From Lepidodermella squamata (lineage: Eukaryota; Animalia; Gastrotricha), in NCBI GenBank assembly GCA_047495785.1, contig JBLDXI010000007.1, positions 2,790,001 through 2,854,000 on the forward strand: a stretch of 64,000 nucleotides of DNA, in the 5' to 3' direction. Positions 12,856-40,461 of this stretch are shown in pieces; the stretch's first letter is position 1, and each line of letters starts with the position of its first letter. The notes beneath the pieces were generated by a model. That model worked only from the letters and a program-made list of their open reading frames with translations, did not search any database and was not told the origin of the DNA. A program made the position numbers and the translations under genes.

Positions 12856-13860
12856 TTAGAGGAGACGGCCAGCTCCAAGACCAACGAGGCCAGCGTTGCC
12901 GACGAGGCCAGCGCGGTTGAGGCCAAGACCGTTGACGCCGTTAACGCCATTGACACCGAGGAGACCAGCATTGCCAACGAAGCCGGCGTTGTTGACGAGG
13001 CCAGCGTTGCCGAGGAAGGCACCGTTGCCGACGAGGCCAGCGTTGCCAAGGAAGGCACCGTTGCCAACGAGGCCAGCATTGTTAACGCCAGCACCGAGGA
13101 AAGCGCCATTTCCGACGAGGCCGGCATTGTTGACGCCAGCACCGAGGAAAGCACCGTTGCCGACGAAGCCAGCGCGGTTGAGGCCGAGGCCATTGACGCC
13201 ATTGACGCCAACGAGGCCGGCGTTTCCGACGAGGCCAGCATTGCCGACGAAACCAGCATTGCCGACGAGGCCAGCGTTGCCGACGAGGCCAGCACCAAGA
13301 CCGAGGCCGTTGTTGGCAGCCTGCTGAGCACCCTGAGCACCCTGGGCGGCAGCCTGGTTGAAGCCCTGAGCACCAGCGGACTGCTGGGCACCCTGAGCGC
13401 CGGCAGCCTGGGCAGCAGCCTGCTGGGCAGCACCGGCGGCGGATCCCTGAGAGCCCTGGGCGCCCTGAGCACCTCCGTAGGCGAAGCCAGTGTCGAAGTC
13501 GCCGGCAGCCTGCTCGGCACCAGCGGAGGTGCGCTCAGAGGCGGCGAGGAGGGAAGCGGCGTGGTCGTAACGGCCAGCAGCCTGCTGGGCATCGGCGTGG
13601 GTGGCGCCCTGGCCGAAAGCTCCAGCGTGGTGAGATCCCTGGGAACCCTGAGCCTGTTGAGCAGCAGCAGCGGCAGCCTGGGCAGCGTGGCCGGCAGATC
13701 CAGCGGAAGCCTGACCACCCTGGGCGCCACCGTTAGCGAAGCCCTGGGAACCAGCGGCGGCGTTGGCAGCAGCAGCGGCATTGCCACCGAAGCCTCCGAT
13801 GGGGAGAACGCCGGCGTTGGCGACGGCGACTACGCCAAGAAGAACGGCAACCTTGAACAT
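12856..13860 (-). CDS. Secreted Gly/Ala/Asn/Gln-rich structural protein, paralog 1
   Basis: Signal peptide MFKVAVLLGVVAVANA, shared core HADAQQAAGRYDH..., GLVGNA/GNGAFL tail repeats, upstream TATA. Confidence 0.9.
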   Translation of the reverse strand: MFKVAVLLGVVAVANAGVLPIGGFGGNAAAAANAAAGSQGFANGGAQGGQASAGSAGHAAQAAAAAAQQAQGSQGSHHAGAFGQGATHADAQQAAGRYDHAASLLAASERTSAGAEQAAGDFDTGFAYGGAQGAQGSQGSAAGAAQQAAAQAAGAQGAQQSAGAQGFNQAAAQGAQGAQQAANNGLGLGAGLVGNAGLVGNAGFVGNAGLVGNAGLVGVNGVNGLGLNRAGFVGNGAFLGAGVNNAGLVGNGAFLGAGVNNAGLVGNGAFLGNAGLVGNGAFLGNAGLVNNAGFVGNAGLLGVNGVNGVNGLGLNRAGLVGNAGLVGLGAGRLL

Positions 13861-13956
13861 TTTAATAGCTGTTAAAGTGAGCTTTAAAACGGGTTATCGA
13901 CTTGGTGTTTTGATTCGCGGCTGGATGATGATGAACAAACCGTCGAATCGAGCCTC

Positions 13957-13963
13957 TTTTATA
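13957..13963 (-). promoter_or_regulatory. TATA box of paralog 1
   Basis: TATAAAA about 100 nt upstream of the ATG; an equivalent element occurs in the paralogs. Confidence 0.7.
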
Positions 13964-16090: not shown

Positions 16091-17035
16091 TTACCAGGCG
16101 TAGCGGGCGAAGCCGAGACCGCCGAGGTGACCGGCGCCATAGCCGCCGAGATGGCCGAGGTTGGCATTGCCGTAGCCGAGGCCGAAGCGACCAGCTCCGA
16201 GACCAGCGCCATAGCCGAAACCAGCACCGTGGCCGAAACCGTTTCCGAAGCCAAGACCAGCGCCGTAGCCGAAGCCAGCGCCATGGCCGAGACCGGCGCC
16301 ATAGCCAGCACCAAGACCAACACGGCCAGCGCCGAAACCAGCACCGTAACCGAGACCGTGACCAGCGAAGCCAGCGTTAGCACCACCAGCGAAGCCGGCA
16401 GCGTTGGCACCACCGAATCCACCATGGCCGTAGAAGACGGGGGCAGCGTGTTGCTGGACAGCGACTGGCTGGACGACAACGTTGGGCTGCTGCTGGACAG
16501 CCTGCTGGGCGACCTGGTGAGCACCCTGGGCGGCACCCTGGTTGAATCCGTGAGCACCAGCGGCATGGTGACCTCCCTGTTGGCCGGCAGCCTGGGCAGC
16601 GCCGAAGTGGCCGGCAGCAGCCTGGGATCCCTGAGAGCCTTGGGCGCCCTGGGCACCACCGTGGGCGTAGCCAGAGTCGAAGTCACCAGCAGCCTGTTCG
16701 GCGGCAGCAGAGGTGCGCTCAGAGGCAGCGAGGAGGGAAGCTCCGTGGTCGTAACGGCCAGCAGCCTGCTGGGCATCGGCATGGGTGGCGCCCTTTCCGT
16801 AGGCTCCAGCGTAGTGGGATCCCTGAGAGCCCTGAGCGTGATGGCCGTTGGCGCCAGCAGCCTGAGCGTGGTGACCGGCAGATCCAGCAGCAGCCTGGTT
16901 GGCATGGGCGCCGCCCTGGGAGGCAGCGTGGTGGCCGGCGTTTGCGGCAGCCGCGGCAGCATTGCTACCAGCGAATCCGCCGAAACTGGCGTTGGCGACG
17001 GCGAAAGCAGCGCAGACAACGGCGATCTTGAACAT
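16091..17035 (-). CDS. Secreted Gly/Ala/His-rich structural protein, paralog 2
   Basis: Start MFKIAVVCAAFAVANA at 17035 matches the paralog starts; conserved core; GYGAGLG/GHGAGFG tail. Confidence 0.9.
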   Translation of the reverse strand: MFKIAVVCAAFAVANASFGGFAGSNAAAAAANAGHHAASQGGAHANQAAAGSAGHHAQAAGANGHHAQGSQGSHYAGAYGKGATHADAQQAAGRYDHGASLLAASERTSAAAEQAAGDFDSGYAHGGAQGAQGSQGSQAAAGHFGAAQAAGQQGGHHAAGAHGFNQGAAQGAHQVAQQAVQQQPNVVVQPVAVQQHAAPVFYGHGGFGGANAAGFAGGANAGFAGHGLGYGAGFGAGRVGLGAGYGAGLGHGAGFGYGAGLGFGNGFGHGAGFGYGAGLGAGRFGLGYGNANLGHLGGYGAGHLGGLGFARYAW

Positions 17036-17083
17036 CTTTGTGACGTCTACAAGTGGATGGATAAAAGATTGAAAAAGTGAATG

Positions 17084-17117
17084 ACTGACGAATCCCTCTA
17101 ATCCGGTCGCTTTTATA
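17084..17117 (-). promoter_or_regulatory. TATA + initiator core promoter of paralog 2
   Basis: TATAAAA at 17117-17111 and TCAGT at 17088-17084, about 30 nt apart. Confidence 0.75.
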
Positions 17118-17827: not shown

Positions 17828-18898
17828 TTATTGAAGATTAAGGCGTTGTAAGAAAGGCAAACCTCCAAGTCTGTTCAAACCGAGGCCCAGGCCAAGTTGT
17901 GCCCTGCCAAGCCCGAGATCGCCGACTGCGACGCGGCCATAGCCTGATCCGAATCTGCCTCCGAAGCCGCTGCCGAAGCCCGATCCGGTTCCAGCATTGA
18001 AACCACCGCCAAAACCTGAGTTTAGTCCCGACCCGATTCCAGCGTTGAATCCTCCGTTAAAACCCGACCCAACGGCAGAGTTGAAACCCCCTGAATTGAA
18101 ACCACCGCCAACTCCAGATCCAATTCCGTGACCAAATCCCCCGTTAGAAACTGATCCTACCCCTGCGTTAACCCCTGAGTTGAAACCACCACCAACTCCG
18201 GATCCGAATCCGTGACCGAATCCGCCTGCATAGTTACTACCGCCTACAGCAATAGGCTTGATGACTGAAGTGTGAAAAAAGAGTTTATACAAAGGCTATA
18301 CATATAGCAGTTGCTACCTACCGTACTGGGCCTGTTGTTGTTGGGGCAATTGCTGCTGTTGTTGCCGTGAAACGATCTGATAACCCTGATTCCCACCATG
18401 CGCCGCTCCAGAATGAGCCGCACCTTCCTGCCCAGCTGCCTCAGCTCCAGCAAACTTGCCAGCTGATGCTTTAGCGCCCTGAGAACCTTGAGCACCCTGT
18501 CCAGTGCCATAGGCGAAACCAGTGTCAAATCGTCCCCCTGAGTTCTCTCCAGCCGCCGAAGTTCGCTCCGAGGCTGATAGCAAGTTGGCGCTATGATCGT
18601 ATCGGCCGGCAGATTGTTCCGCATCAGCGTGAGTTCCGCCTCGTTTGTAAGCGCCTGAAAATTGCGAGCCTTGAGATCCTTCCGCTTGGTGAGCACCCTG
18701 GCCTGCGCCTTGGAAAGTCCCACCAGCAGACCCGGAAACAGCTTGACCCGCGTGAGCTCCAGCTGCCGATCCTGCATGGTTGCCAGCAAAGGCGTCTGCG
18801 GCGCTATTGCTACTGCCGCCTTGATGTAAGTTGATCGGGACTAAGTTTGCATTTGCCAAAGCAAGGGCAGCGAAGAAGGCTGTTGCTGTAATCATCAT
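17828..18898 (-). CDS. Secreted Gly-rich structural protein, divergent paralog 3; exons 18898-18322, 18264-17828
   Basis: Signal peptide and core THADAEQSAGRYDHSANLLSASERTSAAGENSGGRFDTG. A 57-nt GT-AG intron restores QQAQY-VIKPIAV, matching VVQPVAV in paralogs. GFNSG/GFGSG tail. Confidence 0.85.
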
Positions 18899-19629: not shown

Positions 19630-21314
19630 TCAATACATATCATATTTTGGCCCAAGTGAAGTCTCCCGCATCGGTTTAGGATGATCGTCGAATTGGCAAA
19701 GTGTTCGCGGTAATAAGCGACGGGTAGGCACCAGCGAATAATGAGCAGCTGATTCACCAAATCCACTGAGACTAATAACTAATCGGTCCATTTTAGTAAG
19801 GAAGAGCCAATCGAGATAAGTCTTCGCTCCATCCATCCATAGTTCTTCCTCGCTTCTTCCATCAAGTTCAATTTTATCGATGTGAGAAATTTGACTACGA
19901 TCGGTAGTAATAATTTTGATTGTTTCCGACGAGCTCGCGATGAAGTCCGCCAAGTATAGCTGAAAATCGGCGTAGGCTTGCTCCGAATCAGCTGTAATAA
20001 ATATTGCGACACTTTGCCCCGCGAGATCAAGGAAGTTCAGGATTCGTTTAACCTCTTCAGCTTGACATCGCACGTCATCAGCTTTGTACTCAGCTATTTC
20101 GTCTAAAACTGAAAATTCGGTCCATACAATTCAAGTGGTTGGTTTATCAGTATTTGTTACATCTTAGTCTGGATATGCAGTGTCATAGTCCAACTACTTG
20201 TTGCTGGGTCGGTCGCGATAGTGGGGCTGGTCGGGTTGGTGGGTGTGATTTTTTTTCACACTATGTTAATCAATTGATAGAATCGCGTGCTGCCAAGCCC
20301 CATTGATCCCATTGATGCTATCATATCGAAAATCAGAGCAACACGTAGTTGGACTTTGACTCCGCAAAATCCGGCCTAAGATGTAACTGTTAACTTACGA
20401 AAGCTTCGGTGTTGGATACCAATTTTGATACAGTTCCTCCAGTAATCCATACCGACCGAAGTTGTGATGGTTTTTGCAAATAAGGCTCTCAGTCGTGAAT
20501 TCGGCCTTTCGAAGATCAGCCTTAAAGCTGCGGAGATTGCAATGTTAAAATCATAATTGAATCCAAGTAAGCCGGGGGAAAATGTCTCGAAATTGTCCTT
20601 GAAACCCTCGTTCCAAAGCACGCCGTCTAATCCAGCATGCCGATTTGACCATAGCTTCAAATATTTAAATCTCTCTGTTTCATTCAATAACGTCTCCCTC
20701 TGCATGAATGCAGAATAGTTTTCATTTAACAGTTCGTCATGATGTGATAACAGCTTGGTCCTGCTTTCGTTGTATGGTTCGGTGAAAGTTTGCCGGAATG
20801 TGGCAGCATCCACCTGGTAAAAGTGTTCGTTCACTTGAAAATAATCAGCAACATCACCAGGTTTATTCCATTCGAAGTTGAACACCCGATTCGAGCCAAT
20901 TGCGAGGTAGAGGGCGATGACAGAGCCCCTGAGACGATCCCCAAGGCCGTTGCAATTATGATGATCAGGCCTTAGGCAAATCCTGCGGCCTGGAGGTATT
21001 GCCGGATACATGAAATCGAAGCATGCAATATTTTGAGGCAATATGGATCGTTTACAAAACGAAGTTGCAAATTTAACATCATAGGTAGATTTCTCCTTGA
21101 ATTCAGCTGCCACTCGAGCTATGTAGTTTTCTTTGATGGACTTGGCAACAGCGATTGCCTGAGCTTGACGAGCTGATAGTCTGCGGATTTCAAAATCTGA
21201 AAACAGATCATCGTTGTCGCTAGTCGAGCTTTCCTTAACGTTGGTGTATAACAGGAGCAATAAACCTAAAACTGTGATGATAGCAAGATATTTCGTGGCA
21301 AGCTGGCTATGCAT
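19630..21314 (-). CDS. Type II membrane fucosyltransferase-like glycosyltransferase (GT-B, GT23/GT37/NodZ-like); exons 21314-20399, ~20102-19630
   Basis: N-terminal TM anchor and motifs NGLGDRLRG, KIGIQHR, IFITADS, LDWLFL...SLSGFG typical of the alpha-1,2/1,6/O-fucosyltransferase clan. GTAAGT donor with an in-phase acceptor. Confidence 0.75.
20182..20360. mobile_element. MITE-like element in the glycosyltransferase intron
   Basis: 24-bp inverted repeats (20182-20205 / 20337-20360, 2 mismatches); no clear TSD. Confidence 0.55.
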
Positions 21315-22040
21315 TGAACAATTGCCACATTGTGAAGGGGCTGTTATACCTGGGGAAGAGTAAAGAAACACGTAACGCTACATTCTCACCTCTTTTATTT
21401 ACAAATGTTCTTGGATCTATTGTTACTATTACTCGGCTCTTGGATGAACGCAAAAGAGGATCAAACATAAGGTCTAAGCAGTCTTAACACAATAGCGACC
21501 ATGTTGTGATCATTATATCTCATGTTCAGAGCTAGCCATGGTCTATTTCGGGGTGTATCAATACCACCAATAAAGAAGTCACCAATGCCACCAACGGCGG
21601 TTCTCATCTTTCATCTTTTAGCTTGACACCGTCTAGGGCAAGTACGAAATCATGTGTGAACGGTGGAGTTGTGTTGGCTATCTTCAATCCATTAGTGTTT
21701 TAACTGTTATTTACAAACAGGTATCCCAAGTGCCTCCAATCTTACAAGGTTAGATTGCTGCAAGGCTACGTTGGGATATCAACATCCCACATAATTTCTG
21801 GAAAATTCGTTAATAATGGCTACAACAGCCAAATGGGATTGGCAGTTCTCGAATTTTGGTTCGAGTCCATAATCCCCAGATGAGCAGACTTGCTTCAAGG
21901 TCACCCGTACTGAAAAAGAGGGCATGTTGGTGATATTCGACGGCAACAGACCAATCCTTAAAAATGAAGCAGAAAAAATGAAGCGAGTAACGATATTGAC
22001 ATTTTATCTTGAGTAACAGAACATCAACAGGTCACAAAAA

Positions 22041-23240
22041 ATGACAGTCATATTCCAAATTTTAATATTGTATCTTTTTGTCATCGAATCTATTTACGCA
22101 CCAGCCGCCCCAAAAGTGCCCGCCGCGAATGCCGTTATAGTACAACAGCGGTTATCTAACGACACCAAATGCGTAAGGATTCAGTCGAAATCGAAGCAAG
22201 AATATCTCAGGCTGGAATGCGACAGGATCCCGGAGGGAACTCCAATGACTGCTGGCGGAGGAAATTATATTTTTGAGGGGACTAAAGCGGTAGGCGATGG
22301 AATGCAAGACTTCTACGTTCTCTTAAACACAACGAGCAAGACGGCTCTCATCGAATCTGTCATGTCACGCGGGCGCTTTCTGCGGGTTGATTGCGCGACA
22401 TTGCGAATCAATTGCCAATCAGGTGTTGGCCGCAGTGAGACATTCAGTTACGAAACGAACTCTGATAACTCCTTATCTTTTTACTTTGGGGAGGGCACTT
22501 CAAAACGATATCTTACCGTTGGGAAAACCGTCTGCACGAAGAATTTAGCCACGCCTGGGCAAGCGGAGTCGTTCTTCTTGCGCAATGACTGCAAGCCGCC
22601 ACCACCTAAAACCACCACCGCAGCTCCCACTACTGCGAAAGCCGATTCTGTTGGTGCAGGCACAACCAAAGCTGGTAGCAGTAACGCGGGTGCGACCACG
22701 GCTAAGCCATCTGGCACGACATCTGGCACGACAGCAAAGGGATCTGATTCGGGCACCACGACTAAAGCTGGCGCAGCCACCACAAAACCGGGAGATGCTC
22801 CGCCAGCAACTACTGCAAAAGCGTCTGATACAACAACGACAAAAGCTGGACAAACCACTGCTAAGCCGGCGGATGCTGCGCAAACTACCAAGGCCCCTGA
22901 CTCCGCTGCTACAACTAAAGCCGCGGAAACTACAACTAAGGCTGGTGATGCCGCGACAACAACGACTGCCAAGGCCGGGTCAGAAACTACCACGACTAAG
23001 GCTGCCGATACTACAACCACCACGGCAAAAGCTGGCGAAACTACCACGACTAAGGCTGCCGCGGCTACAACCACCACAGCTAAGGCTGCCGATACCACAA
23101 CCACCACAGCTAAGGCGGTCGATACTACAACTACTACAGCTAAGGCTGCCGACACCACAACCACCACAACCACTACAACCACTACAACAACTAAAGCCAC
23201 TCAGGCTGCGCAAACCACTACCACAGCTAAAGCCGGCTAA
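22041..23240 (+). CDS. Secreted fascin-like beta-trefoil protein A with Thr/Ala/Lys mucin-like tail
   Basis: Intronless; signal peptide; YLRLEC, FLRVDC, INCQSGVGRSETF; about 210-aa tail of TTTTAKAAD-like repeats. Confidence 0.8.
   Translation: MTVIFQILILYLFVIESIYAPAAPKVPAANAVIVQQRLSNDTKCVRIQSKSKQEYLRLECDRIPEGTPMTAGGGNYIFEGTKAVGDGMQDFYVLLNTTSKTALIESVMSRGRFLRVDCATLRINCQSGVGRSETFSYETNSDNSLSFYFGEGTSKRYLTVGKTVCTKNLATPGQAESFFLRNDCKPPPPKTTTAAPTTAKADSVGAGTTKAGSSNAGATTAKPSGTTSGTTAKGSDSGTTTKAGAATTKPGDAPPATTAKASDTTTTKAGQTTAKPADAAQTTKAPDSAATTKAAETTTKAGDAATTTTAKAGSETTTTKAADTTTTTAKAGETTTTKAAAATTTTAKAADTTTTTAKAVDTTTTTAKAADTTTTTTTTTTTTTKATQAAQTTTTAKAG
22612..23237 (+). repeat. Coding tandem repeats (T)nAKA(A/G)D/E
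   Basis: Degenerate units of about 27-30 nt (e.g. actacaaccaccacagctaaggctgccgat). Confidence 0.9.
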
Positions 23241-23833
23241 ATGCCGCAGTGTGGCAGCTTACAAGTTACAAAATCCGAGTGGACTCCTTGTTATACTAAC
23301 TTTTATTTGAGGCTCTTGAAAGAATAAAAGTAATATAGGTAACTGCAACCTGCAACAAACTTGGGAAGCAACATTGCATTAAAACACATTTTTCCAGTCT
23401 GGCGAGACAAGTTGCACTTCCCTGAGTTTTTAAGCGATTATTTAAATGGGGAAGGCCAGACAAGTTAACAGTTGCCGGCTGTCGGTGTTCAGCATTGATT
23501 AGGAAAACTATTGAATATAAGTCAGAGTGAAATAATATTGCTTAAATTGTAGAGTTTGCCAAGTGAGTTCGTTGACCTGCTCATTTTTTTATTATTGATT
23601 GCACGAAAATTGGTGATGACTTAAAGAAGGAGAACAAATGTCGATCTCTGACTAATTATGGTGTAGAGTCTGTCGAATAACTCCGAAACTTTTTGGAGTA
23701 TTTAAGCAAGAACTCGAGCCCACGTTTCTTAGAAAACCTGCATGAAGTCGTGCAGATGCGTGGTTCAAAAGAAAACACCCTTTGTTGAGTCGTGGTTAAG
23801 CTGCAAGCGTGCTACTTCTCAAATTTTGCTCAA

Positions 23834-25087
23834 ATGCCAAGAATAGCCTTTATTCCATCCATATTAATTTTAAGCGTCTTATTTTCTCTAGTTCAATCTC
23901 AAGAAAAGGGTAAAATCTACGCTTTCGAATCAGCAGCTCATCGCGGTCGGTATTTGCGTCTCGATTGCGTTGGCTATAACGCCAATCTGCAACAAGGGTG
24001 GGGGCCATGGGAAAGGTTCTATATCATCCCTCGTCAGAACAATTCTCTGGCACTAGAATCCGTAGATAATCCTGGACGCTTTGTGACATCATCGTGTCCG
24101 AGTTATACATGTGGCCGGGGTGATTCACAATCACGCGATCAATTCGTACAGGAAACCAACGATGACGGAACAATTTCTTTCAGGCAGAGAACAACGGCAA
24201 TTTATCTTGGTGTTATGGGCGCAGAGAATTTCAACCAGTTTAGTTCCAGCGGCGGAGGTTACTCGGCTTGTCTGCTGGAGAAAACTATATTCGCTAAATT
24301 TTTTCTCACTGAAATTGGCACGGCTGCAATAACGGACTCCAACTCTACTTCACCTGGGCAGCTCATCGAACTCACTGAAAGACCAGGGTCATTTTTCGAA
24401 GCAGACTGCAGATCAGTCACTAAACCGGAAGGTGACGGCGGGGGTCGCTTTGGCATCTCAACGACTGTAAGTTCACTTAGTGAGTTCATCATGGCTAAAG
24501 ATGACGATGGCTTGTGGTCGATTCAAACGACCAGCCCTAAGGGTCGTTATCTTCGCGGAGATTGCAATAGCGCAACATCGCGATTAAGTGGGACTGTCAA
24601 CTGTCAGTATGGATTAGGGCCTTATGAGAAATTTGTTCGCGAATTCAATGCTGATGATGGATCTTACTCGTTCCGTTCTTACTCATTTAGTGCTTATATT
24701 GGTTCGGATGGTGTTAGCCTCAGGTGCAGAGCTAACAAAACTTCAACAGAAAGATTTTGTCTCCGAAACAGGCCGCAAGCAAATGATTCTGTTGAAGTTC
24801 CTTTTACGACAATCACCCGCAGCACCGCCTTCACCCCGACCCTTCTAACTCCTAGTACTACTGCATCAATCTCGACGAAATATGTTTTCCCAACAACAGC
24901 TGCTTCAGCTGCTGTGAAAAATGCTGAAGTTGTTGTTAGCGAAACAATGCCCATTTCTTCCACGGTCGAAACTGTTCGCAGAACAACAAAAGACAACAAC
25001 AGTTCAAAAAACTCTTCTGGTACTATTCATTCCTTTGTTGTTGCCCACATCTTAATTTGTTATTTTAAGAGAGCTATTGTGTCGTAA
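23834..25087 (+). CDS. Secreted, possibly GPI-anchored, double fascin-like beta-trefoil protein B
   Basis: Intronless; signal peptide from MPRIAF; repeats YLRLDC..NLQQGWGPWERF and YLRGDC..VNCQYGLGPYEKF; S/T-rich stalk; hydrophobic C-terminus. Confidence 0.8.
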   Translation: MPRIAFIPSILILSVLFSLVQSQEKGKIYAFESAAHRGRYLRLDCVGYNANLQQGWGPWERFYIIPRQNNSLALESVDNPGRFVTSSCPSYTCGRGDSQSRDQFVQETNDDGTISFRQRTTAIYLGVMGAENFNQFSSSGGGYSACLLEKTIFAKFFLTEIGTAAITDSNSTSPGQLIELTERPGSFFEADCRSVTKPEGDGGGRFGISTTVSSLSEFIMAKDDDGLWSIQTTSPKGRYLRGDCNSATSRLSGTVNCQYGLGPYEKFVREFNADDGSYSFRSYSFSAYIGSDGVSLRCRANKTSTERFCLRNRPQANDSVEVPFTTITRSTAFTPTLLTPSTTASISTKYVFPTTAASAAVKNAEVVVSETMPISSTVETVRRTTKDNNSSKNSSGTIHSFVVAHILICYFKRAIVS

Positions 25088-25180
25088 ATTAAAGAACAAG
25101 GAAATTGAACAAAAAGCCTATTATAGCTGGATAATTTCTCCAAGACAGCGTGGGTGCACTTTGAAAGACTTTAAAAAAAG

Positions 25181-26125
25181 ATGGACTCTTACATCCATTT
25201 GCTTTTCCTGTTGCAGCTTAATTTGCTGCTAATTTCAGTGACAGCGCTGAGTTTTGATGGTTCTAAAGTCTACTCTTTTGAATCCGGGGCTTATCGCCGT
25301 CGGTTTCTACGGGTTGAATGTGGCGTTGCTGCAAACCTACAAACTAGTGCAGGGCCGTGGGAACGATTCAAAATTACAACCAAAGCAAATGGCTTATCAA
25401 CTATTGAGTCTGAGTTCTTCACTGGTAACTACATTAGCATTGCAGGCTCCATTCAAAATCGGCGAATTGAGTGCAGTGATTGGTTGCCTGGTGATAACGA
25501 GCTGTTTGTGATCGAGAGAAATGCCGACGATACCTTTTCAATCAAAAATCGCGCGGCGAATTGCTATCTCGCTGCGTATGGAGGCGAAACCCAGGCTAAC
25601 CCAGGAACCCCAATCGGTTCTATAATATGCGCTGCTACTAAAACTCTCAACAGCAAATTTTTCATGCAAGAAGTTCCGATGTCGCCAACTTCGAGCCCTA
25701 CAACAACCAAAGTTCCCGAGCCTATTTACTTCGTGGAAAGTTTTGCGAAGAGGAACAACTTTCTTCAAGGCGATTGTGGCGCGGTGGTAAAGTATAACGG
25801 TGCCGGCGGCGGAAGGTTCTTTGTCTCTGATAAGCCGAGATACGATTTCTCGACCTTCATCGCTGAGCCGACTGATGACGGTCTATGGACTCTCCAACCT
25901 GTCAAAGCTAAAGGCCGATATCTTAGGATAGACTGCGGTGGAACGATCAATTGTCAGTTCGGTGTAGGGCCCTGGGAAAGGTTTCATCTCGAATTCAATG
26001 CTGAAGACGGAACATATTCTTTCAAATCGACTGATTACAACAAGTATCTTGGCATCACAGATTCCGGACTCGGCTGTAAACCTAACAGAACAAAAACTGA
26101 AAAATTCTTACTGAAACTCATTTAA
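25181..26125 (+). CDS. Secreted double fascin-like beta-trefoil protein C
   Basis: Intronless; signal peptide; NLQTSAGPWERF and YLRIDCGGTINCQFGVGPWERF; clear paralog of protein B without the stalk. Confidence 0.8.
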   Translation: MDSYIHLLFLLQLNLLLISVTALSFDGSKVYSFESGAYRRRFLRVECGVAANLQTSAGPWERFKITTKANGLSTIESEFFTGNYISIAGSIQNRRIECSDWLPGDNELFVIERNADDTFSIKNRAANCYLAAYGGETQANPGTPIGSIICAATKTLNSKFFMQEVPMSPTSSPTTTKVPEPIYFVESFAKRNNFLQGDCGAVVKYNGAGGGRFFVSDKPRYDFSTFIAEPTDDGLWTLQPVKAKGRYLRIDCGGTINCQFGVGPWERFHLEFNAEDGTYSFKSTDYNKYLGITDSGLGCKPNRTKTEKFLLKLI

Positions 26126-26394: not shown

Positions 26395-27717
26395 TTAGTA
26401 GAAGAAGCCACGGCCATAACCGAGGTTGTTGCCACCGAAAGCCCATCCGTTGCGGCCAAGACCGCCGAGGAAACCACCGAAACCGGCATTGTGGCCAGCG
26501 TTGACGTTACCAGTGTTGAAGCCATTGAAACCAGCACCGAAGCCAAGGCCGAGGCCAAGACCGTTGACGCCGTTGGCACCACCGAAGCCCTGAGCACCAC
26601 CAAGGTGAACACCGTTGGCAGCACCGAAGCCACCGAAACCAGCGCGCTGGCCAGCGTTGACGTTAGCAGCGTTGAATCCACCGAATTGGGAACCAGCTCC
26701 GTAGCCAAGACCAAGGCCGCCGAGGCCAAGACCGTTGACACCGTTGGCAGCACCGAAGCCCTGGGCGGCACCGAGGTTGACACCGTTAGCAGCACCGAAG
26801 CCACCGAATCCACCGAAACCAGCGCGCTGGCCAGCGTTGACGTTGGCGGATTGGAGACCACCGAATTGGGCACCAGCAGCACCAAGACCAGCACCATAGC
26901 CGAGGCCAAGACCAAGACCGTTGACACCGTTGGCGGCACCGAATCCCTGGGAAGCACCGAGGCTGACACCGTTGGAAGCACCGAATCCACCGAATCCACC
27001 GACGCGGCCAAGACCGAGACCGAGACCAGCGCCATAGACTGGGACACCACCGAAGAGACCAGCGCCATATCCCCAACCACCATGGGCAGCGATGGGCTGC
27101 TGGACGGCAACGGGCTGCTGGACGGCGACGGGCTGGACAACAACCTGGGGCTGTTGGCGGACGGCCTGTTGGGCAGCCTGCTGGGCACCCTGGGCGGCAG
27201 CCTGGTTGAATCCGTGAGCACCAGCGGCCTGCTGGGCACCCTGTTGACCGGCAGCCTGGGCAGCAGCCTGCTGGGCAGCGGCAGCCTGGGATCCCTGAGA
27301 GCCCTGGGCGCCCTGGGCAGCGCCGTGGGCGTAGCCAGTGTCGAAGTCACCAGCAGACTGCTCAGCGGCAGCCGAGGTGCGCTCAGAGGCGGCGAGGAGG
27401 GAAGCAGCGTGGTCGTAACGGCCAGCAGCCTGCTGGGCATCAGCGTGGGTGGCGCCCTGGCCGAAAGCTCCGGCGTGGTTAGATCCCTGGGATCCCTGGG
27501 CGTGGTGGCCATTGGCGCCAGCAGCCTGGGCGTGGTGACCGGCAGATCCAGCGGAAGCCTGGTGGCCATTGGCGCCACCGTTCGAAGCAGCCTGGGCAGC
27601 GTTGGCAGCATTGGCAGCAGCGCCACCAAATCCACCGCCAAAACCGCCGAAACCGCCGATGAATCCGCTGGCGTTAGCCGCGGCAACAACACCGAGGAGA
27701 ACAGCAAGCTTGAACAT
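26395..27717 (-). CDS. Secreted Gly/Ala/Asn-rich structural protein, paralog 4
   Basis: Signal peptide, conserved core, GFGAANGVN(L/G) repeats, ends GRGFFY. Confidence 0.9.
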   Translation of the reverse strand: MFKLAVLLGVVAAANASGFIGGFGGFGGGFGGAAANAANAAQAASNGGANGHQASAGSAGHHAQAAGANGHHAQGSQGSNHAGAFGQGATHADAQQAAGRYDHAASLLAASERTSAAAEQSAGDFDTGYAHGAAQGAQGSQGSQAAAAQQAAAQAAGQQGAQQAAGAHGFNQAAAQGAQQAAQQAVRQQPQVVVQPVAVQQPVAVQQPIAAHGGWGYGAGLFGGVPVYGAGLGLGLGRVGGFGGFGASNGVSLGASQGFGAANGVNGLGLGLGYGAGLGAAGAQFGGLQSANVNAGQRAGFGGFGGFGAANGVNLGAAQGFGAANGVNGLGLGGLGLGYGAGSQFGGFNAANVNAGQRAGFGGFGAANGVHLGGAQGFGGANGVNGLGLGLGFGAGFNGFNTGNVNAGHNAGFGGFLGGLGRNGWAFGGNNLGYGRGFFY

Positions 27718-30656: not shown

Positions 30657-31868
30657 TTACAAGAAGAATCCGCGGCCATAACCGAGGTTGTTGCCGCCGA
30701 AAGCCCAGCCTTGACGACCGAGACCGCCGAAGCCAAGACCGTTTCCGTAACCAGCGCCATAGCCGCCGAGGCCAGCGCCATAGCCGAGGCCAAGACCGTT
30801 GACGCCGTTGGCGCCACCGAAGCCCTGAGCAGCACCGAGGTTGACACCGTTGGCAGCACCGAAGCCACCGAAGCCAGAGCGCTGACCAGCGTTGACGTTG
30901 GCACCCTGGAATCCGCCGAACTGGGAACCAGCTCCATAACCAAGACCAAGACCGCCGAGGCCAAGACCGTTGACGCCGTTGGCGGCACCGAAGCCCTGGG
31001 CAGCACCGAGGTTGACACCGTTGGCAGCACCGAATCCACCGAATCCACCGACGCGCTGGCCAGCGTTGACGTTAGCACCGCTAAGACCGCCGAACTGGGC
31101 ACCAGCAGCACCAAGACCAGCACCATAGCCGAGGCCAAGACCGTTGACACCGTTGGCAGCACCGAAGCCCTGGGCGGCACCAATGTTGACACCGTTGGCA
31201 GCACCGTAGTTACCACCATAGGCGGGGACTCCACCGAAGAGACCAGCGCCATATCCCCAACCGCCATGGGCAGCGACGGGCTGGACGGCGATCTGCTGAA
31301 CCTGGGGCTGGTAAGCCTGCTGGGCAGCCTGCTGAGCACCCTGGGCGCCAGCCTGGTTGAATCCCTGAGCACCAGCGGCCTGCTGGGCACCCTGTTGACC
31401 GGCAGCCTGGGCAGCAGCCTGCTGGGCAGCGGCAGCCTGGGATCCCTGGGAACCCTGGGCGCCCTGAGCACCACCGTAGGCGAATCCGTTGTCGTAGTCA
31501 CCAGCGGACTGCTCAGCAGCAGCCGAGGTGCGCTCAGAGGCGGCGAGGAGGGAAGCAGCGTGGTCGTAACGGCCAGCAGCCTGCTGGGCATCAGCGTGCT
31601 GAGCACCCTGACCGTAGGCACCGGCGTACTGGGATCCCTGGGAACCCTGAGCGTGATGACCGTTGGCACCAGCAGCCTGAGCCTGGTTGCCGGCAGCGCC
31701 GTTGGAGGCCTGACCACCCTGAGCGAAACCGTTGGAGGCAGCCTGGGCAGCAGCGTTGGCGGCGTTGTTGGCAGCAGAACCACCGAAGTTGTTGAGGCCG
31801 AAGCCACCGACGAATCCGCTGGCGTTAGCGGCGGCGACGACGCCGAGAAGAATGGCAACCTTGTACAT
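30657..31868 (-). CDS. Secreted Gly/Ala/Asn-rich structural protein, paralog 5
   Basis: Signal peptide, conserved core, tail nearly identical to paralog 4, ends GRGFFL. Confidence 0.9.
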   Translation of the reverse strand: MYKVAILLGVVAAANASGFVGGFGLNNFGGSAANNAANAAAQAASNGFAQGGQASNGAAGNQAQAAGANGHHAQGSQGSQYAGAYGQGAQHADAQQAAGRYDHAASLLAASERTSAAAEQSAGDYDNGFAYGGAQGAQGSQGSQAAAAQQAAAQAAGQQGAQQAAGAQGFNQAGAQGAQQAAQQAYQPQVQQIAVQPVAAHGGWGYGAGLFGGVPAYGGNYGAANGVNIGAAQGFGAANGVNGLGLGYGAGLGAAGAQFGGLSGANVNAGQRVGGFGGFGAANGVNLGAAQGFGAANGVNGLGLGGLGLGYGAGSQFGGFQGANVNAGQRSGFGGFGAANGVNLGAAQGFGGANGVNGLGLGYGAGLGGYGAGYGNGLGFGGLGRQGWAFGGNNLGYGRGFFL

Positions 31869-31948: not shown

Positions 31949-33813
31949 GCCAACGCCAGACTGCTGAATCTACTACCCGCAGTGTAACCGAATATCATGT
32001 TATGTGTTTTGTCACCGGTGCACTTTTCCCAACTCGATTTTCACCACAATGTCCCAGCCCATCGATCGGGAACCCTTGCATCAGAGCTCCGGGCGTCCTA
32101 TAACCCTGCTAGGGAGGTCTCTATCAAATTTTTGAAGGTCGAAGTTTTCGACAGGGTACTAGGTGTTTTAACGAGTGGCTACGGTTGTCCAGACTTTGTC
32201 GTCGTTTTTGCGCGCTCTGCATGGCAAAAAACGCGATGGTCGAAGATAACAACAACTTAACGTGGCGCATGTGGCCGGCCACACCAATAAAGGTGCTGGC
32301 GTGAGCTCGCCGGTTGCCGGCCTCCGAGGGCCCTCGTGCGGCCACCATGTTTCGCGCCTTGTATTTGCATATATAACATATAACCTCCAATATTATTATT
32401 TCAAACCCACCATCGGCGTACACGCGCATAAACACGTTTTTTTGCATATGTTGATAGGCTTCGGCACGCGCTACACGGCCCGGTGCTGCTTGACTCTGCC
32501 GCGGCCATTACGTTAGTGTTAAGCGGCCACGGCGATTAGGAAAATTGCCGTAATACAAATTATACCTAGAATTTTGTCCTTCAGCAGCTTTACATTGTTT
32601 AAACCCCGGTTATATGACGCTTATCTTGTTAAAATTAAAGTATCACGCTCTGCTTACGTGTGTTGTTTTAAGCCGGATGAAGCATAATAAAAAAATTGAC
32701 CGACATTGCGTTCGCTTTTTTGTCAAATAATGGTTTATTTTATTTCTCATGAAAAATAAAGCACTGGGAACAGATCGCGAAAATTGTAATAAATTGTCGA
32801 TCAGTTCAGGCAAATTGAAGTGTGTCGATTCGACCTCCGATTCGATATAGGCCTTGCTCGCGCATTTTGAGGTGTTATCTTTTACTCTCTCCGGAATTTC
32901 GGAAAGTTATTCACCTTTTTTCATTTCAAGGTTAGCTTCATTTCAGTGGGCGACCCTAAAATTTGGGGAGAATAAAAAACAGCCTTGCCTTTTTTGCTGG
33001 AAAAAATTTAATCATTGACTCAAATTTTTAATTCAATTTTTTCATTTGTTAGCAATTTTTTGCTTGATTTAGGTTAAACTTTGTTTTTCTTTCTGGTCAA
33101 ATCTTGGGTTCTCTCCAAGAGCGGCTTATTTTCACGGCGTGCGAAAGCTGGGATTAAGGTGACCGCTATACCGATAATATCCCTCGCTGAGCCTCGGGGA
33201 TTAGCTTCAAAGAGGTTAAAACATCAAACATTCAGCTCCTTTTGGGTTGGCACGACAAACACCATAGAAAATTAGAAAAATACCTGGATTCAAGCTTGAA
33301 CATAATAATATGCATATAAAGCAGGTTCACCTTTTTTACCGATAATTCAAATTTCTTGGAAAATCAACTCAAATGAAACCGAAGGGTTAAAATGTTCTAG
33401 AATTGTGGAGTGATATGGATTATTAGGCTCTTAAACAGTTTCAGTTGAAACCAAAAATGGTGGGAAAATTTGATTCATTTACATTCATTTTTCTCGATTT
33501 CATTGGATATTATTGTGTTATTAAAATTTCGAAAAATAAATCGCCTCAAGTTCCCAAGTCCAACGTCCTCCATCCGGAAAGGCTTCGGCTCGGAGACAAA
33601 AACGGAACAAGTATTTTGAAAAATTCATTGCCTTTTTATTTTTAGCGATGTTTTTTCAACACCGCCGATCTTCGATCCGAAATCTAGGCTACTCTTACAT
33701 AGTTTGGAAAACGAATCAACGTTGGTGAAATATTTCAAACGGGCTACGATAGGACTTTGAGTAAATAATGTTCTTCTCAGGCAGTGATAGCAGGGTTTGA
33801 GAATAGCGGCTGC

Positions 33814-34855
33814 TTAACCGAGGAAGGCGCCGTTGCCAACAAGGCCGGCGTTTCCGAGGAAGGCACCGTTGCCGACGAGGCCAGCGTTGCCAGCGAAGCC
33901 AGCGCGGTTGAAGCCAAGACCGTTGGCGCCGTTGACGCCGAGGAGACCAGCGTTGCCGAGGAAGGCGTTGTTGCCGAGGAAGGCACCGTTGTTGACGCCA
34001 GCGCCGAGGAAAGCGCCGTTGCCAGCGAAGCCAGCGTGGTTAAGACCGAGGCCATTGACGCCATTGACGCCAGCGAGGCCAGCGTTGCCGCCGAGGAAGG
34101 CACCGTTGCCGTAGCCATAGCCGAGGTTGGCACCTCCGAATCCGAGGTGGCCAGCGCCGAGGTTGGCAGCGCCATAGCCGAGACCAGCGCCATAGCCGAG
34201 GCCAAGACCGTTGGCACCGACGAGGCCAGCACCAAGACCGAAACCGTTGTTGGCAGCGTTGGCAGACTGGGCGGCGCCGTTGGAGGCAGCCTGGTTGAAT
34301 CCGTTGGCACCAGCGGACTGCTGGGCACCCTGTTGGCCGGCAGCGTTGGCAGCAGCCTGGTTGGCAGCAGCGGCGGCGGATCCCTGAGAGCCCTGGGCGC
34401 CTTGAGCACCACCGTGGGCGAAGCCAGTGTCGTAGTTGCCAGCGGCCTGCTCGGCACCAGCGGAGGTGCGCTCAGAGGCGGCGAGGAGGGAAGCGGCGTG
34501 GTCGTAACGACCAGCAGCCTGGTTGGCATCAGCGTGCTGGGCACCCTGGCCGAAAGCGGCAGCCTGCTGAGATCCCTGGGAACCCTGTTCGCCGAAAATG
34601 TCTTAAAAAAATCCGATTTTTCTATCGAATTTGTCTCACCTGAGCCTGGTTGGCGGCAGCAGCGTTGGCAGCAGCCTGGTGGCCGCTGGCGGCGCTGGCG
34701 GCGTTGCCAAAGTTGGCACCACCGTTGGAAGCGGCGTTGGAACCGAAGTTGGAACCGAAGTTTCCGAAGCTTCCACCGAATCCGCCGAATCCTCCGAGGG
34801 GGAGACCGGCCTGGGCGACGGCGAGAACAGCGGCGAGAACGGCGACCTTGTACAT
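33814..34855 (-). CDS. Secreted Gly/Ala/Asn-rich structural protein, paralog 6; exons 34855-34640, 34584-33814
   Basis: Signal peptide MYKVAVLAAVLAVAQA. A 55-nt GTGAGA..AACAG intron restores AQ-GSQGS; conserved core; GNGAFL tail; in-frame TAA at 33816-33814. Confidence 0.88.
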
Positions 34856-34900
34856 TTTCTGGTTGATTTTACAACTTGAAAATTAAAACTACCAACGTTG

Positions 34901-34936: not shown

Positions 34937-36384
34937 GCCTCAAACGGCATATTTAGCCTAATACACGCCGTTTCATCTCACCGCATTGGATCATTCTATA
35001 TCATTTCCACCTCAAGTCCCAACCTCGAAACTGAATCTTTCAATCATGGCACTTCCGTCTTGATATTATCATGTTAAATTTTGATAATTGGAAAAAATTT
35101 AAATTAATTGAACCGTGGCCTGTTTAACCGAGCTGCTACGGTAAAAAACTCGGAACGGATGATTTTTTTTCCTCTTAATTGCCAAACTCGCCGCTGCGTG
35201 TAGGAGATGCGCCCAGGGTGGTTCATGTGCATACCCGCGCTTTTAATGGCCGGCACGCTTCGTTAGATTAATCGCTGCCTTATCCACTTGTATTATGTTT
35301 TAATCTTTTTAATATACAAGTGTATTTCCCCTCTCTTGCGTCAAGTATAGTATAAACTTGACAATGGCCGGTCCATAGTTGAGGGTGATGCGGCAAAACC
35401 ATTAACAATGCCGCTCTTGTTAATACTTTGTGTTAACACTTTTTTTACGATGGCCAACGAGTGGCCGCACGGCTTTAAACAAATGACTGCTGTGAGCCGA
35501 TTATCACTATTATTTTACGCACGTGCGGATTATTGCACTGCAATTTAATTGACCGATAAAAAAATACCTGTGTTTTTTATGCCGCCTGTAGGAACCCTAA
35601 TAATCAGGTGCGAGAATTTTCTCATAAAATTAAAAGACGGGGGCCCGTTGGCAGGTGAAATCCGCCAAGGTGTCAACCAGTTTAAAATAATTACAGAATC
35701 ATCAACGTTGAGACAAGAAAAAGTCCGAGAGCGATAGGATGCTCACTTGATGAGTGCAAATTCTGAAAATTTGCGCTGTGAACATGAGTGCAGAAAGTTC
35801 ACAAATATTTGGGGTCACGTGACTGCGCGAGGTTCAAAATCATGTAATAAATACTCTGCATTTTGCATTTTTCATTCAAATTTTTAAGGTGGCCTTTTTC
35901 AAGCTGGAACAAAACTCCATTCAGCAGAAAAAACGTCATTAAAATTAGCGTTTTCTTTATTTCAAATGTGATTTTATAAAACAATAATTCTTTCCGTACA
36001 TACATTAAAACATTTCTTTACATTGTGTACCTGTTGATATTGTTCAAATTAAAGCCCTGTCTACACCTGGCCAAGTAAAAGCGCGGATTGAAATTTGTAC
36101 AAGAATTTCGAAGCCTGCTTCGGTGAATGAAGTGAAAATTTATAACAGAAAATTTCACCAGCTGAAACGATATGATAGAAACTCAACATGAGATGCCGAT
36201 CGGACGAACACGTGACAAAATTTCCAATAAATAAAATAACAATAATTATTCGATAAAAGCAACAATTAATTTTACACGATTTATAATTATCTATTTTCGT
36301 GCGAAGACGGGTTTTTTTGCTAAAAAGCTGTGTGAAATTTGTGTATTTTGAGATGAAAAACACAGTGGTGATGGTGCATTGTGG

Positions 36385-39300
36385 TTACATTTCCCATAGC
36401 GACGCGTCGTTGACGTCCTTGCCGCGGGCGAACACGACGCCGCTCTGTTCGCCGACTAGATAGAGCAGGCCGGCGCCGTCGCCCGACGGCGCGTTCTCGG
36501 CGTGCCGGATGGCTGCGCGCCCGCTGCGCCGCAGTTCGAAACGGAAGCAAGAAGCAGCGGCAACGTCATCACAATCAGCAACTACCGACAGCTCACCGTC
36601 GACAACTCGCCAGAACTTGCCATTCATCGCTTAATTAAAAAAATACCAATTTTTAATTTATTTAATTCAAATCCTGTATCAATTTTTTCTATTTTTCAGG
36701 CTGTTCAATTTTTCTAGACATTTTTCAGTTTTTGTCAAGTTTTTTGGTCAAGCTTTGTTTATCTCCAGTAGTTGCTGCTTTTTTCTAGCAATAAAACGGA
36801 TTAAATTATTATATCTACGGTGCGCAAAAGCTGTAAAAGTCGAAAGGAGATGACCATGAAATCCCTCGACGTCAGCCACGAGGATTAGAGGAAAAGAGGT
36901 TAAAACAATAAGGGCAAAATTCCAATCCTGGAAAGCACCTAACACCATAAAAAATAGTGCGGCGAAAGCAGGAAATTTTGAAAAAAATTTTAAAAAATTA
37001 AAAAAAAATCGAATAAAAAAATGAAAATTTCTAAAAAAATAATTTCGAGACAATTTCGAGGTTAAAAAGTCGATGAAATTTTGCTATCTTATAGGAAATT
37101 AAATTGTCAACATTTCTAATATTCCTTCATCAAAGAGCTGAAGTAAAGCTAAAAATGTGGCATACCTTTAATTTTGTACGTTCCAAGTGAATGTTGGACG
37201 AGTTCGAAGACGTCGTGAACAACTCGCGAGCAGTCGAGTCGATTGGCGATGCCCTTGGACGAGACAGCGGCACTGCCTATGCCGATGAAGCCGTAGATGC
37301 CTCGAAAGACGGTCAACGGCCGGTTGACAATGTCGACGTAGAACTTTTCGCGATCAGTCAACGCCGTTTGCGCGTTTGTCGTCGCCTGCAGCGCGCCCGT
37401 CGGATTCGCCTTCACGTAGCACCCGTTCGAAACTGATTTGAAGGTAACAGCCCCGGTCGACGCGTGCCACGTCGCCTCAAACAACGCATCTCCACTTGTT
37501 TTATCGTCACAGGCCGCTGTAACCCCGGTTGATTTCGCTCCCTTAGCGTTAATTTGCCAGTACTTGCCCTTGGCGCCTAGTAGGGTCCAGTGACTATCGC
37601 GATTTATTTCGACCTGGAAAACTTCGTTGTTAGAATACGGCGTGAAATCTGGCGGTGAATCTTCGTCTGGCTCGAGTTTATGTTGATTCGCGCTAACGTC
37701 CATTCCTTGTTTAATCGAGACATATTTCCCATTGCCGCAGTTAGTTAGCGTGACTTGGGGATGTGCCTCGCAGATTTCGAACAGTTCGTCCTTTGTGATG
37801 GCCTTGCGGATGGAGGATCGTAGCATGCCGACGCCTGATGCGCAGAGGCATGAGCCGACAGCGTCGCGAAATACGACGCCGCTTAATTGCTGGAGGCCGA
37901 CGCAGGTTTTGAACTCGAGCGAAAACAGCGTGTCACGTGACAAACACGGCACAAGGCTGCCATCTCTGCGTTTAATTGAATTAATCAAAGAAAATTTATA
38001 AAAAAATATTTTTTTGTTTTAAAAACCTAAAAATTACAACTTCATCACATTCGGTGCATTTTTCACCAGAAAATATTGCTAGTTATTTGAAAAAATAGAG
38101 GTGATCTTCAAGCAAATTAAAATCCAAAATTTGGCTCCAAATTTTAAATTATGATGGAATATATCGATTTTATAAACTATTAGTCCTACTTTCCCAATTT
38201 TTACCTTGATTTGTTTATATTACTGTTAGGAATTTACTCCTCATTTTTCTTATTTTCGGCGTGTTTTCGTTTCGGGTAACATTTTTCCGTAATTTTCGCA
38301 TATATTGGATTTCAGAAATTCTAGATTTATTTATTGATTCATTCTTCAAAGGAAAATTTTCTAAATTTCTTAATTTAATTTCTTTCATAAGAAACATTTT
38401 CTTCGAGTTTCAGCCTTCAGCCTTCAGTTTTACTCCGTCCTCTATTGCGTTATAATATTACGGCTCTTCATTCACTTCAAAAAAAACAGCTTGTGACAAC
38501 TCCTCCTTGAGTTTTCCGGCCCGAAGCGTTAAAATGATCGATTTTCTCTAGACCCTAATTTCATCCTCAACTTCCAACCTTAGCAGTATCCTTAACAAGT
38601 TTCCCTGGATTTTTTAGTTTGATATTCGGCATTTGAAAAATTTGAAAAATTCCCGTTGCTGCATCACTTGTCGCCGCTAAATTTGTTATTTCATCAACAT
38701 ACCTGTGCAAATATTTGTTATTAGCCGCCGATCGAATGGCGTACTTGCCGTCGTAGAACTCGAGCAGAAGAATCGGTTTCTGGCCCCACGGTATAACATC
38801 CGTGCATAGAAACGCATCGCCATCGTTGTTCAGCGTCGCGTAACGGCATCCTCGCCCGAAATTTTTCAAATGCACCATAGGCGTAGCACTCAACTGAGCA
38901 TGCCACAGCTCACTGTCGCCCACCGCCGCCGTTCGATCCACCTTACACTGAACAGTATCCGGCATCTCCTCCTGGTGTTTACTCCCAGCTTTTTGCTGCG
39001 GTTGCCATACCCCAAGATAGCACCCACTCGCGACATTTCGAATCGCCCATCGTCCGACTGTGAATGAAGAAGGCGACGAGGAGGCTGAGTTAGAATCTGG
39101 ACTAGATTCCCCGTCTTCGCCAGCTGGCGGGGCCCGTTCGAATTCGATGACGAACTGCGTTTCCGGGGTGCGTTCGCTCGAGTCGCAAGTGACGATGCCC
39201 TTCGCCGTGGCGGATAAATAGCAGCCGCTCGCTGATTTGAGGTACACAATATCACTTGGGCCGCCGTTTGGCGACGGTTCCGAACACTCGAGGGTCCATT

Positions 39301-40461
39301 GTTGGCGCTGCTTCAACGCTGTTCCAAGTACGTTTAATCGATTATTGAACTTTTCGGCAGTCTGAAATGGACAAAAAGGAATAAAGCAAAATATCTAAAA
39401 AAAAATTTAAAAAATTTAAAAAAAAACCCAAAGTTCGAACTTTAGAGTTTTTAGGCTGGGATAGTAAAAAAAAATAAAATCCTGGTTATTATCAAACGAC
39501 GCAGATTTGACCAAAACGAAGCAAGATTAGCCAGAATCCTATACCTAACCATTTTTTCATTTTTTTGAGGCAGAACTTTCACTGTCCAACATAGAAATAG
39601 AAGTCGAATCTTAGCTGAATGATATTTCAGCGGAACAGCTTAAAAATCCATCTTATCGATCAATAAATCAATGTCGAGAAATGCCAAGCTTGGGTAAGTT
39701 ATTTCAGGGTTAAACTAAGTCTTATTTCATCGAAATGAAAACAAGTTTATTCAATTTAAAAAAAAGTTAAAAATGATCTAGAAAAAACTGAAAGAGCAGA
39801 AAAAACATGGAGAAAAAATTCAATGCATTAAAAATATGAAGTCTTACTTTAAGCGGCACCGAATCTCGAATCTTCAAATCGCTCGGAAATGATTTTTTCC
39901 CAATTTTTACAAATTTCATGAATAATCCTTAGTAAATCGAAAAAAATTACTATCAAATTCCTTACGAAGAATTTGAACAAAATTAGCTTGACGCCGCTAT
40001 AATTTTCCGAAATTAACCCAGAATTCGATTTGAAAATTACAAACCAGGTAGCGACCAGTCATTGAATTGCAGAAGCCGACTTTAAGCGACAGTGGTTCAC
40101 TGGGCAGTTGTTGTTGAAGCTTAGCTTGGGCCTTGGCCTGAACCTCGCTAAGGCGTCGGCCTGAATTCGGCCGGCTGTTGTTCGCCGAGCCGTTGCCATT
40201 CGACTCCTTTGAGCCATTGCTACTGCTCTCGAACGCGTAGTTCTCCGGTTTATTGTCACCATTCACCATGGTTGGCGAGACTGGTTCGGTCGGGGTAGTC
40301 GGCGAGAGTGGCGCTGGCGATGATGTGTCACCTTGTCCATTAGCCACCGACGCAGCGTCGCCATTTTCTGAATTAATTGACGACGCCTGCTCGATAACTG
40401 TTAGCTCAGCACTGGCGGCGGACACGTGCGGGTTGCCATCGCTATCCTGTGTCGTCTCCAT
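36385..40461 (-). CDS. FSCN: Fascin (actin-bundling, singed-like); exons 40461-40045, 39361-38703, 37965-37166, 36629-36385
   Basis: GRYL-TAEKF..LNVLGTALKQRQQWTLE, KDELFE...HPQV, GKYVSIKQGMDVSANQ, IVNRPLTVFRGIYGFIG and C-terminal LWEM. All junctions are GT-AG and in phase. Confidence 0.95.

Follow-up and report, generated by a model that had tools for sequence, protein, structure and literature searches.

A tandem array of genes for secreted glycine-rich proteins in the gastrotrich Lepidodermella squamata, with an embedded block of transferase and beta-trefoil genes and an adjacent fascin gene

Six paralogous genes encoding secreted proteins rich in Gly, Ala and Gln are arranged on the minus strand of a 64,000-nucleotide (nt) stretch of the genome of the gastrotrich Lepidodermella squamata (contig C7:2790001-2854000), hereafter referred to as the window. 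These structural genes (S1 to S6) occupy positions 12856-34855, all positions being coordinates within the window and all genome-wide counts referring to the 121.2-Mb, 151-contig assembly. Between S3 and S4, the array encloses a block of ~6.5 kb (19630-26125) that holds a transferase gene and three genes for beta-trefoil proteins with a signal peptide (T1 to T3), and a fascin gene, likewise on the minus strand, lies 1.5 kb past S6. An initial annotation of this DNA had described a structural-protein array that encloses a glycosyltransferase and three secreted beta-trefoils and is followed by fascin, and every one of these elements was recovered in its place. The array is a real structural-protein locus and, as judged from the sequence, we consider with moderate confidence that the genes of the embedded block are ordinary neighbours, and that fascin lies next to it by chance. 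The structural genes are the following:

S1, 12856-13860, minus strand: intronless; 334 amino acids (aa); signal peptide, 80-aa core and 6-aa repeats of the NAGLVG type; family match with 61% identity; TATA box at -103; codons GGG, GCA and GCG absent.
S2, 16091-17035, minus strand: intronless; 314 aa; tail rich in GxGYG/GFG; TATA box at -82 and a TCAGTC initiator.
S3, 17828-18898, minus strand: exons 18898-18322 and 18264-17828, with a GT..AG intron; 337 aa; divergent paralog without a canonical TATA box and with a weaker codon bias.
S4, 26395-27717, minus strand: intronless; 440 aa; tail repeats of ~57-62 aa (GFGAANGVNGLGLG...); repeat families D5, D7 and D10; TATA box at -79 and an initiator.
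S5, 30657-31868, minus strand: intronless; 403 aa; 86% identity to S4, with tail repeats of ~57-62 aa as well.
S6, 33814-34855, minus strand: exons 34855-34640 and 34584-33814, with a short GT..AG intron; 328 aa; tail of the S1 type.

The proteins encoded by these genes follow a common plan, in which a signal peptide of the A-x-A type (MFKLAVLLGVVAAANA) precedes a core of ~80 residues and a divergent Gly-rich tail. The core (HADAQQAAGRYDHAASLLAASERTSAAAEQ...) shows a mean column identity of 86% and, as read from the sequences, carries nearly all the charged residues, while the tails diverge, evolve fast and are rich in Gly, Ala, Asn and aromatic residues. The mature proteins contain 26-29% Gly, 22-26% Ala and 8-12% Gln, lack Cys completely, and hold around six acidic and six basic residues, together with 14-21 Ser plus Thr. 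No N-glycosylation sequon was found in the mature S proteins, the sole N-x-S/T being located in the signal peptide. The motif G[YFW]G is repeated 12-20 times in S2, S4 and S5. The ratio of nonsynonymous to synonymous substitution rates (dN/dS) in the core is ~0.28, with dS values of 0.16-0.6, which argues for purifying selection on the core, and not merely for (recent) gene conversion.

The family comprises 16 genomic matches, counted as ~15 genes: six belong to the array of the window, seven make up a second array (C32:4.436-4.453 Mb), and C43 and C17 hold one each. A tree built with the 240 nt of the core does not resolve the branching, and does not date the duplications with respect to the embedded block. 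S6 and S1 have the repeat families D1, D2 and D9 in common, and it is with S1 that S6 shows its lowest dS (0.16). The same 18-nt repeat tail is present in S1 (12881-13329) and in S6 (33778-34155), the two genes that delimit the array and are separated by 21 kb. The tail in common and the low core dS suggest a recent duplication or a gene conversion across the embedded block.

Regarding relatives elsewhere, Pfam holds no family for S1-S5, and a profile of the core found no match in the PDB at an expectation value (E) <=1. A scan of metagenomes with the core, which is a weak test, revealed no relatives, and a word-indexed protein search with the N-terminus of the S proteins returned no matches, although low-complexity words dominated this search and make its outcome uninformative. 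The S family thus appears to be an orphan one, so far restricted to the L. squamata genome, on tests outside this genome that are weak.

With the exception of S3, the S genes are set apart from all the other genes of the locus by their promoters and their codon usage. A TATAWAWR sequence lies 75-150 nt upstream of the ATG in 11 of the 12 family members tested, usually as GGCTATAAAAG, and most of the TATA-bearing genes exhibit an initiator of the TCAGTC type ~30 nt downstream. No TATA box of this type precedes the transferase, T1-T3, fascin or any of the four flanking genes examined. In the same way, a search for k-mers enriched in the 500-bp upstream regions yielded the TATA box alone among the S promoters, and no k-mer that these promoters have in common with the other genes. 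Four of the five S genes scored in the window show an extreme codon bias: in S1, S2, S4 and S5 there is no GGG among 82-122 Gly codons, and only 0-2 GCA or GCG among 83-98 Ala codons. These three codons are freely used by S3, the trefoil genes, the transferase, fascin and the flanking genes. TATA promoters and a strong codon bias are typical of mass-produced proteins, and in the S genes they can be read as marks of mass production.

According to the model that we propose, the S proteins would be secreted in bulk by a secretory epithelium and would self-assemble outside the cell, through their charged core and their glycine/aromatic repeats, into a protein matrix. The best candidate for this material would be the scaled cuticle, followed by the egg shell and, in the last place, by some other secretion. 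Lamprin, silkmoth chorion, spider silk and the glycine-rich cuticle proteins of insects are self-assembling proteins with repeats of the GGLGY/GxGYG type. In a comparison of features, and not of aligned sequences, the S family resembles them in its signal peptide, its high content of Gly and Ala, its aromatic-glycine repeats, its organization in tandem multigene arrays, its TATA promoters and its codon bias. Unlike them, it possesses a unique and invariant charged core of 80 aa, and holds no Cys and almost no Pro. It also differs from the known cuticle, silk and eggshell families, such as the chitin-binding R&R cuticle proteins and the collagens, in that it shows no chitin-binding domain, no Pfam family and no relative of solved structure. 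The clusters of insect cuticular-protein and chorion genes are similar in that tandem genes for secreted low-complexity proteins have other genes caught between them. Contrary to those clusters, the genes interspersed in the L. squamata array are themselves secretory-pathway genes, which makes a functional link tempting, even though co-regulation finds no support.

The genes of the embedded block are the following (spliced genes were searched exon by exon, and their exons were joined locally to check the frame and the stop codons):

Transferase, 19630-21314, minus strand: exon 1 at 21314-20399 and exon 2 at 20108 (or 20102)-19630; splice sites read from the sequence.
T1, 22041-23240, plus strand: signal peptide, one beta-trefoil (~residues 38-186) and a Thr/Ala/Lys mucin-like tail of ~215 aa.
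T2, 23834-25087, plus strand: signal peptide, two beta-trefoils, a Ser/Thr-rich stalk and a short hydrophobic C-terminus, predicted to be a glycosylphosphatidylinositol (GPI) signal or a short membrane anchor.
T3, 25181-26125, plus strand: signal peptide and two beta-trefoils.

The transferase and T1 are divergent genes with a common spacer of 729 bp. The N-terminus of the transferase is a type-II membrane anchor, as in Golgi-type enzymes. Neither of its exons matches any Pfam family, even at E<=10, and a word-indexed protein search with exon 1 gave no matches. A phmmer search against 1.84 billion representatives retrieved 21 relatives, and a match to XG_FTase was seen in one of the 22 members of the resulting family, with a weak E of 0.0024. 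When the profile of this family was compared with the PDB, it matched AtFUT4 (9nqh, E 5.5e-5) and AtFUT1 (5koe, E 0.007), and the alignment to GT37 spans the N-terminal GLGxRL loop and the IQIR, TSDS and SRSGFG..A motifs. In the window gene itself, exon 1 encodes NGLGDRLRG and IGIQHR, and the motifs FITADS and ISLSGFGESAA are encoded by exon 2. Its neighbours in the ESM Atlas are all fucosyltransferase families (XG_FTase, O-FucT and FUT8); a single-sequence AlphaFold model of exon 1 was unusable, with a predicted local distance difference test score (pLDDT) of 37. The profile match and the presence of motifs across both exons make the designation fucosyltransferase-like (GT37-like) a reasonable one, at the level of the superfamily only. 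The name fucosyltransferase given in the initial annotation is therefore upheld by the family profile and the motifs at that level, and not by the window protein taken by itself, which has no Pfam match. Compared with the plant GT37 enzymes AtFUT1 and AtFUT4, the window transferase has the same type-II membrane topology, and the IQIR, TS(D/L)S and SRS(G/T)FG..A motifs of the superfamily are common to the plant enzymes and to the transferase family; unlike the plant enzymes, it falls below every Pfam threshold.

This transferase belongs to an expanded family, with at least 78 matches scattered over the genome, many of them in tandem clusters (for example, at C19:1.96-2.19 Mb, at C13:1.21-1.24 and 1.95 Mb, on C15 and at C9:4.47 Mb). 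Among these matches, the closest paralogs of the window gene are those of the C19 cluster, with 52-58% identity. Some of the relatives in databases reach 600-800 aa and carry the transferase domain in their C-terminal half. The closest foreign relative (34% identity) is encoded in a Logan contig of 1869 bp from SRR23086389, on which there is no other gene. Its coding sequence is broken right after the IGVQVR motif, at the same place as in the window gene, and the remainder lies at 1085-1612. The position of the intron appears to be conserved in another organism.

T1, T2 and T3 are intronless and related to each other, with similarities of E 1e-7 to 6e-9 between T1 and T2/T3, and with 37-39% identity between T2 and T3. 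The tail of T1 is made of 10-aa repeats (a 30-nt repeat family, D8) and contains 26% Thr. Domain A of T3 is recognized by Pfam as RicinB_lectin_2 (E 1.5e-10), with a score of 42.1 bits where the cut-off is 25.6; T1 and T2 alone are not recognized by Pfam. Domain B of T3 shows a weak match to human fascin in the PDB (E 0.002), and its AlphaFold2 model, built on an alignment of five domains, contains 12 strands, with a pLDDT of 91 and a predicted template-modelling score (pTM) of 0.85. With this model, Foldseek assigned a probability of 1.0 to many trefoils. The top natural match was that of the human fascin domains, with a template-modelling (TM) score of 0.78, a root-mean-square deviation (rmsd) of 2.3-2.4 A and 20-22% identity. 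These were followed by ricin-type lectins (rmsd ~4 A), CBM92 and toxin trefoils, including those of insecticidal toxins. The Pfam match and the model identify T1-T3 as beta-trefoil proteins.

As read from the sequences, the (QxW)3 sugar-binding signature of ricin is essentially absent, given that the five domains together contain a single Q-x-W (QGW, in T2); YLRxDC and GPWERF are the motifs that recur in them. The description of these proteins as glycan readers in the initial annotation holds as far as lectin-type beta-trefoils are concerned, in view of the RicinB_lectin_2 match and the fold model. We propose that T1-T3 may be glycan-binding or glycocalyx proteins. Their domains resemble the trefoils of fascin and of the ricin type in the 12-strand fold, and RicinB_lectin_2, CBM92 and DUF7910 are further trefoil families to which they can be likened. 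Unlike fascin, the T proteins are secreted, hold conserved Cys pairs, consist of one or two domains instead of four, and bear mucin or stalk extensions. Their similarity to the neighbouring fascin is no greater than that conferred by the common fold. The possibility that the T genes are recent copies of that fascin was ruled out, the best BLASTP match having an E of 0.03.

T3 starts 93 bp after the stop codon of T2 (25088-25180), so that a promoter of T3 would overlap the 3' end of T2, and it is possible that both genes are co-transcribed. The three close paralogs are found in the genome at this locus only, and the domain profile detects four or five distant paralogs elsewhere. Distant paralogs on C1 (L007:1968-3041) and C2 (L008:1598-2557, and also C2:1912579-1912932) hold a C-terminal extension of ~150 aa with conserved Cys (...CDNRDG...QQIVGRCG...). 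This extension has no Pfam match, and the layout recalls that of lectin-plus-effector proteins.

The last element of the locus is fascin, which was genuine, as had been annotated:

Fascin, ~36385-40491, minus strand: multi-exon gene, identified by Pfam Fascin and by colinearity with human fascin.

Fascin (PF06268) consists of four tandem beta-trefoils. Pfam Fascin matches were obtained on three exons (38567-39316, 37149-37988 and 36385-36627), and phmmer aligned the gene product with residues 99-217 (E 3e-11) and 197-427 (E 2e-24) of human fascin, in a colinear manner. The gene is TATA-less, shows an ordinary codon usage and is the single fascin match in the whole genome, so that it must serve all the fascin functions of the animal. 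Its first exon (39997-40491) encodes a low-complexity region of ~130 aa rich in Ser, Asn and Pro before the first trefoil, which is unusual for a fascin, and the position of the start codon is uncertain.

The initial annotation had interpreted all these genes as a co-regulated module of scaffold proteins, glycan writer, glycan readers and cytoskeletal template. This interpretation finds no support in the sequence, and several results speak against it. The S genes differ from the others in promoter class and codon bias, the TATA box is the only motif common to the S promoters, and the linkage is absent at the paralogous S loci. Furthermore, the transferase is a member of a large dispersed family, fascin has no second copy in the genome, and the mature S proteins hold almost no sites for glycosylation. 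Exact-protein look-ups of two proteins among transcripts gave no record. No trefoil, transferase or fascin was found near the S genes of C32, C43 and C17, and the transferase match nearest to the C32 array, among the at least 78 in the genome, is ~0.94 Mb away. Moreover, in a compact genome with clusters of secreted-protein genes and expanded glycosyltransferase families, of which ~2000 windows were read, some juxtapositions of this kind are expected by chance. The embedded block may thus be regarded as a set of neighbouring genes for the biology of cell-surface or secreted glycoconjugates, probably independent of the array that surrounds it, and fascin as the sole general-purpose fascin of the animal, which would have come to lie beside the array by chance.

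Several points weigh against this preferred reading. Core-promoter class and codon bias inform on the level of expression and the type of promoter, and not on the cell type, and the k-mer search covered few promoters and had low power. By our own estimate, which assumes ~78 copies placed uniformly in 121 Mb, a copy of the transferase would be expected inside a given array of 22 kb in ~1-2% of cases. The embedded block is tightly packed: adjacent genes in the stretch that runs from S2 to S4 are separated by 93-792 bp, whereas the other S genes stand 1.9-2.9 kb apart. Tight gene packing can accompany shared chromatin domains. Finally, the three close trefoil genes are present nowhere else in the genome.

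These points lead to the alternative that survives best, although we regard it as doubtful. In this partial module, the S genes, T1-T3 and the transferase would be expressed in one secretory epithelium, and would take part in forming a single extracellular layer, such as a protein matrix overlaid or organized by a fucosylated mucin/lectin coat, with fascin excluded. The embedding of the block with such short gaps, the common spacer from which the transferase and T1 diverge and the restriction of the close trefoil genes to this locus are consistent with this possibility. So are the signal peptides on all seven non-enzyme products, all the products being in the secretory pathway, and the mucin-like tail of T1 and the Ser/Thr stalk of T2, as possible sugar acceptors. 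Against it, the S genes differ from the T genes and the transferase in core-promoter class and codon bias, an upstream motif in common was not found, and the second S array lacks such partners. In addition, the transferase family has at least 78 genomic matches, and sites for glycosylation are lacking in the S proteins. Far likelier sugar acceptors than the S proteins would be the mucin-like stalks of T1 and T2, and it is more plausible that the transferase decorates mucin-type stalks or other glycoconjugates.

It is unlikely that the trefoil block represents a defence unit (immune or toxin-type lectins) or a horizontally acquired one that landed in the array. The trefoil genes are indeed intronless and without animal relatives by word search (the search with T3 returned no matches), their distant paralogs bear an extra C-terminal domain, and Foldseek also matches the trefoils of insecticidal toxins. 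Nevertheless, the trefoil alignment found no relatives in bacterial and archaeal genomes or in metagenomes, and the GC content and codon use of these genes are typical of the host, which leaves horizontal transfer without support. The absence of introns is seen likewise in S genes, the top natural structural match is to an animal fascin (at 20-22% identity), and the block is flanked by genuine animal genes on a contig of several megabases.

A similarly improbable reading is that the array and the block together form an animal "material-building" cluster, co-expressed in the epidermis, that lays down and patterns the scaled cuticle. Its parts would be the orphan silk-like proteins, a fucosyltransferase dedicated to this task, and fascin-like lectins that are secreted or tethered to the membrane, one of them on a mucin stalk. 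The full module, in which scaffold, glycan writer, glycan readers and an actin-bundle template made by fascin are co-regulated for one cuticular structure, is the least credible of all, as physical adjacency alone speaks for it (fascin lies 1.5 kb past S6 on the S strand), while fascin is a single-copy, multi-exon and TATA-less gene without codon bias that serves all fascin functions, and the other S loci have no fascin.

The genes that flank the locus are ordinary animal genes with regulatory and housekeeping functions, in agreement with the housekeeping clusters that had been annotated on both sides:

PCI-domain gene, 3348-3935, left flank.
CNOT3, Not3 domain at 4431-4934, left flank.
Activin-receptor-type kinase, 44305-45681, right flank.
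Ankyrin/SOCS-box gene, 46096-50876, right flank.
TAF1, 51606-62720, right flank: DUF3591 and double bromodomain.

The GC content of the window ranges from ~38 to 57%, and is mostly near 43%. The DUF3591 of TAF1 is divided into two parts (53105-53725 and 56113-56868), and the gap between them (53726-56112) holds two open reading frames (ORFs) on the minus strand, opposite to TAF1, at 54581-55015 and 55173-55517. These ORFs have no Pfam match, and are possibly the remnant of an intronic mobile element. With respect to the assembly, each of two unrelated queries scored identically on C10 and on C48, in opposite orientation (C10:2288785-2289198 with C48:205068-205481, and C10:2456020-2456874 with C48:46742-47596). 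It is probable that C48 duplicates part of C10 or is an uncollapsed haplotig of it.

No publication on the protein components of the cuticle, the scales, the egg shell or the glue of gastrotrichs was retrieved in a search of the literature. In a compact genome, the adjacency of secretory-pathway genes and fascin to an array such as this one should not be taken for a functional module unless expression or synteny speaks for it. If the material-building cluster were true, it would provide the first molecular handle on the gastrotrich cuticle, as well as a rare case of functional clustering of non-homologous genes in an animal. By virtue of their TATA promoters and extreme codon bias, the members of the S family offer a concrete set of candidates for proteomics and in-situ work.

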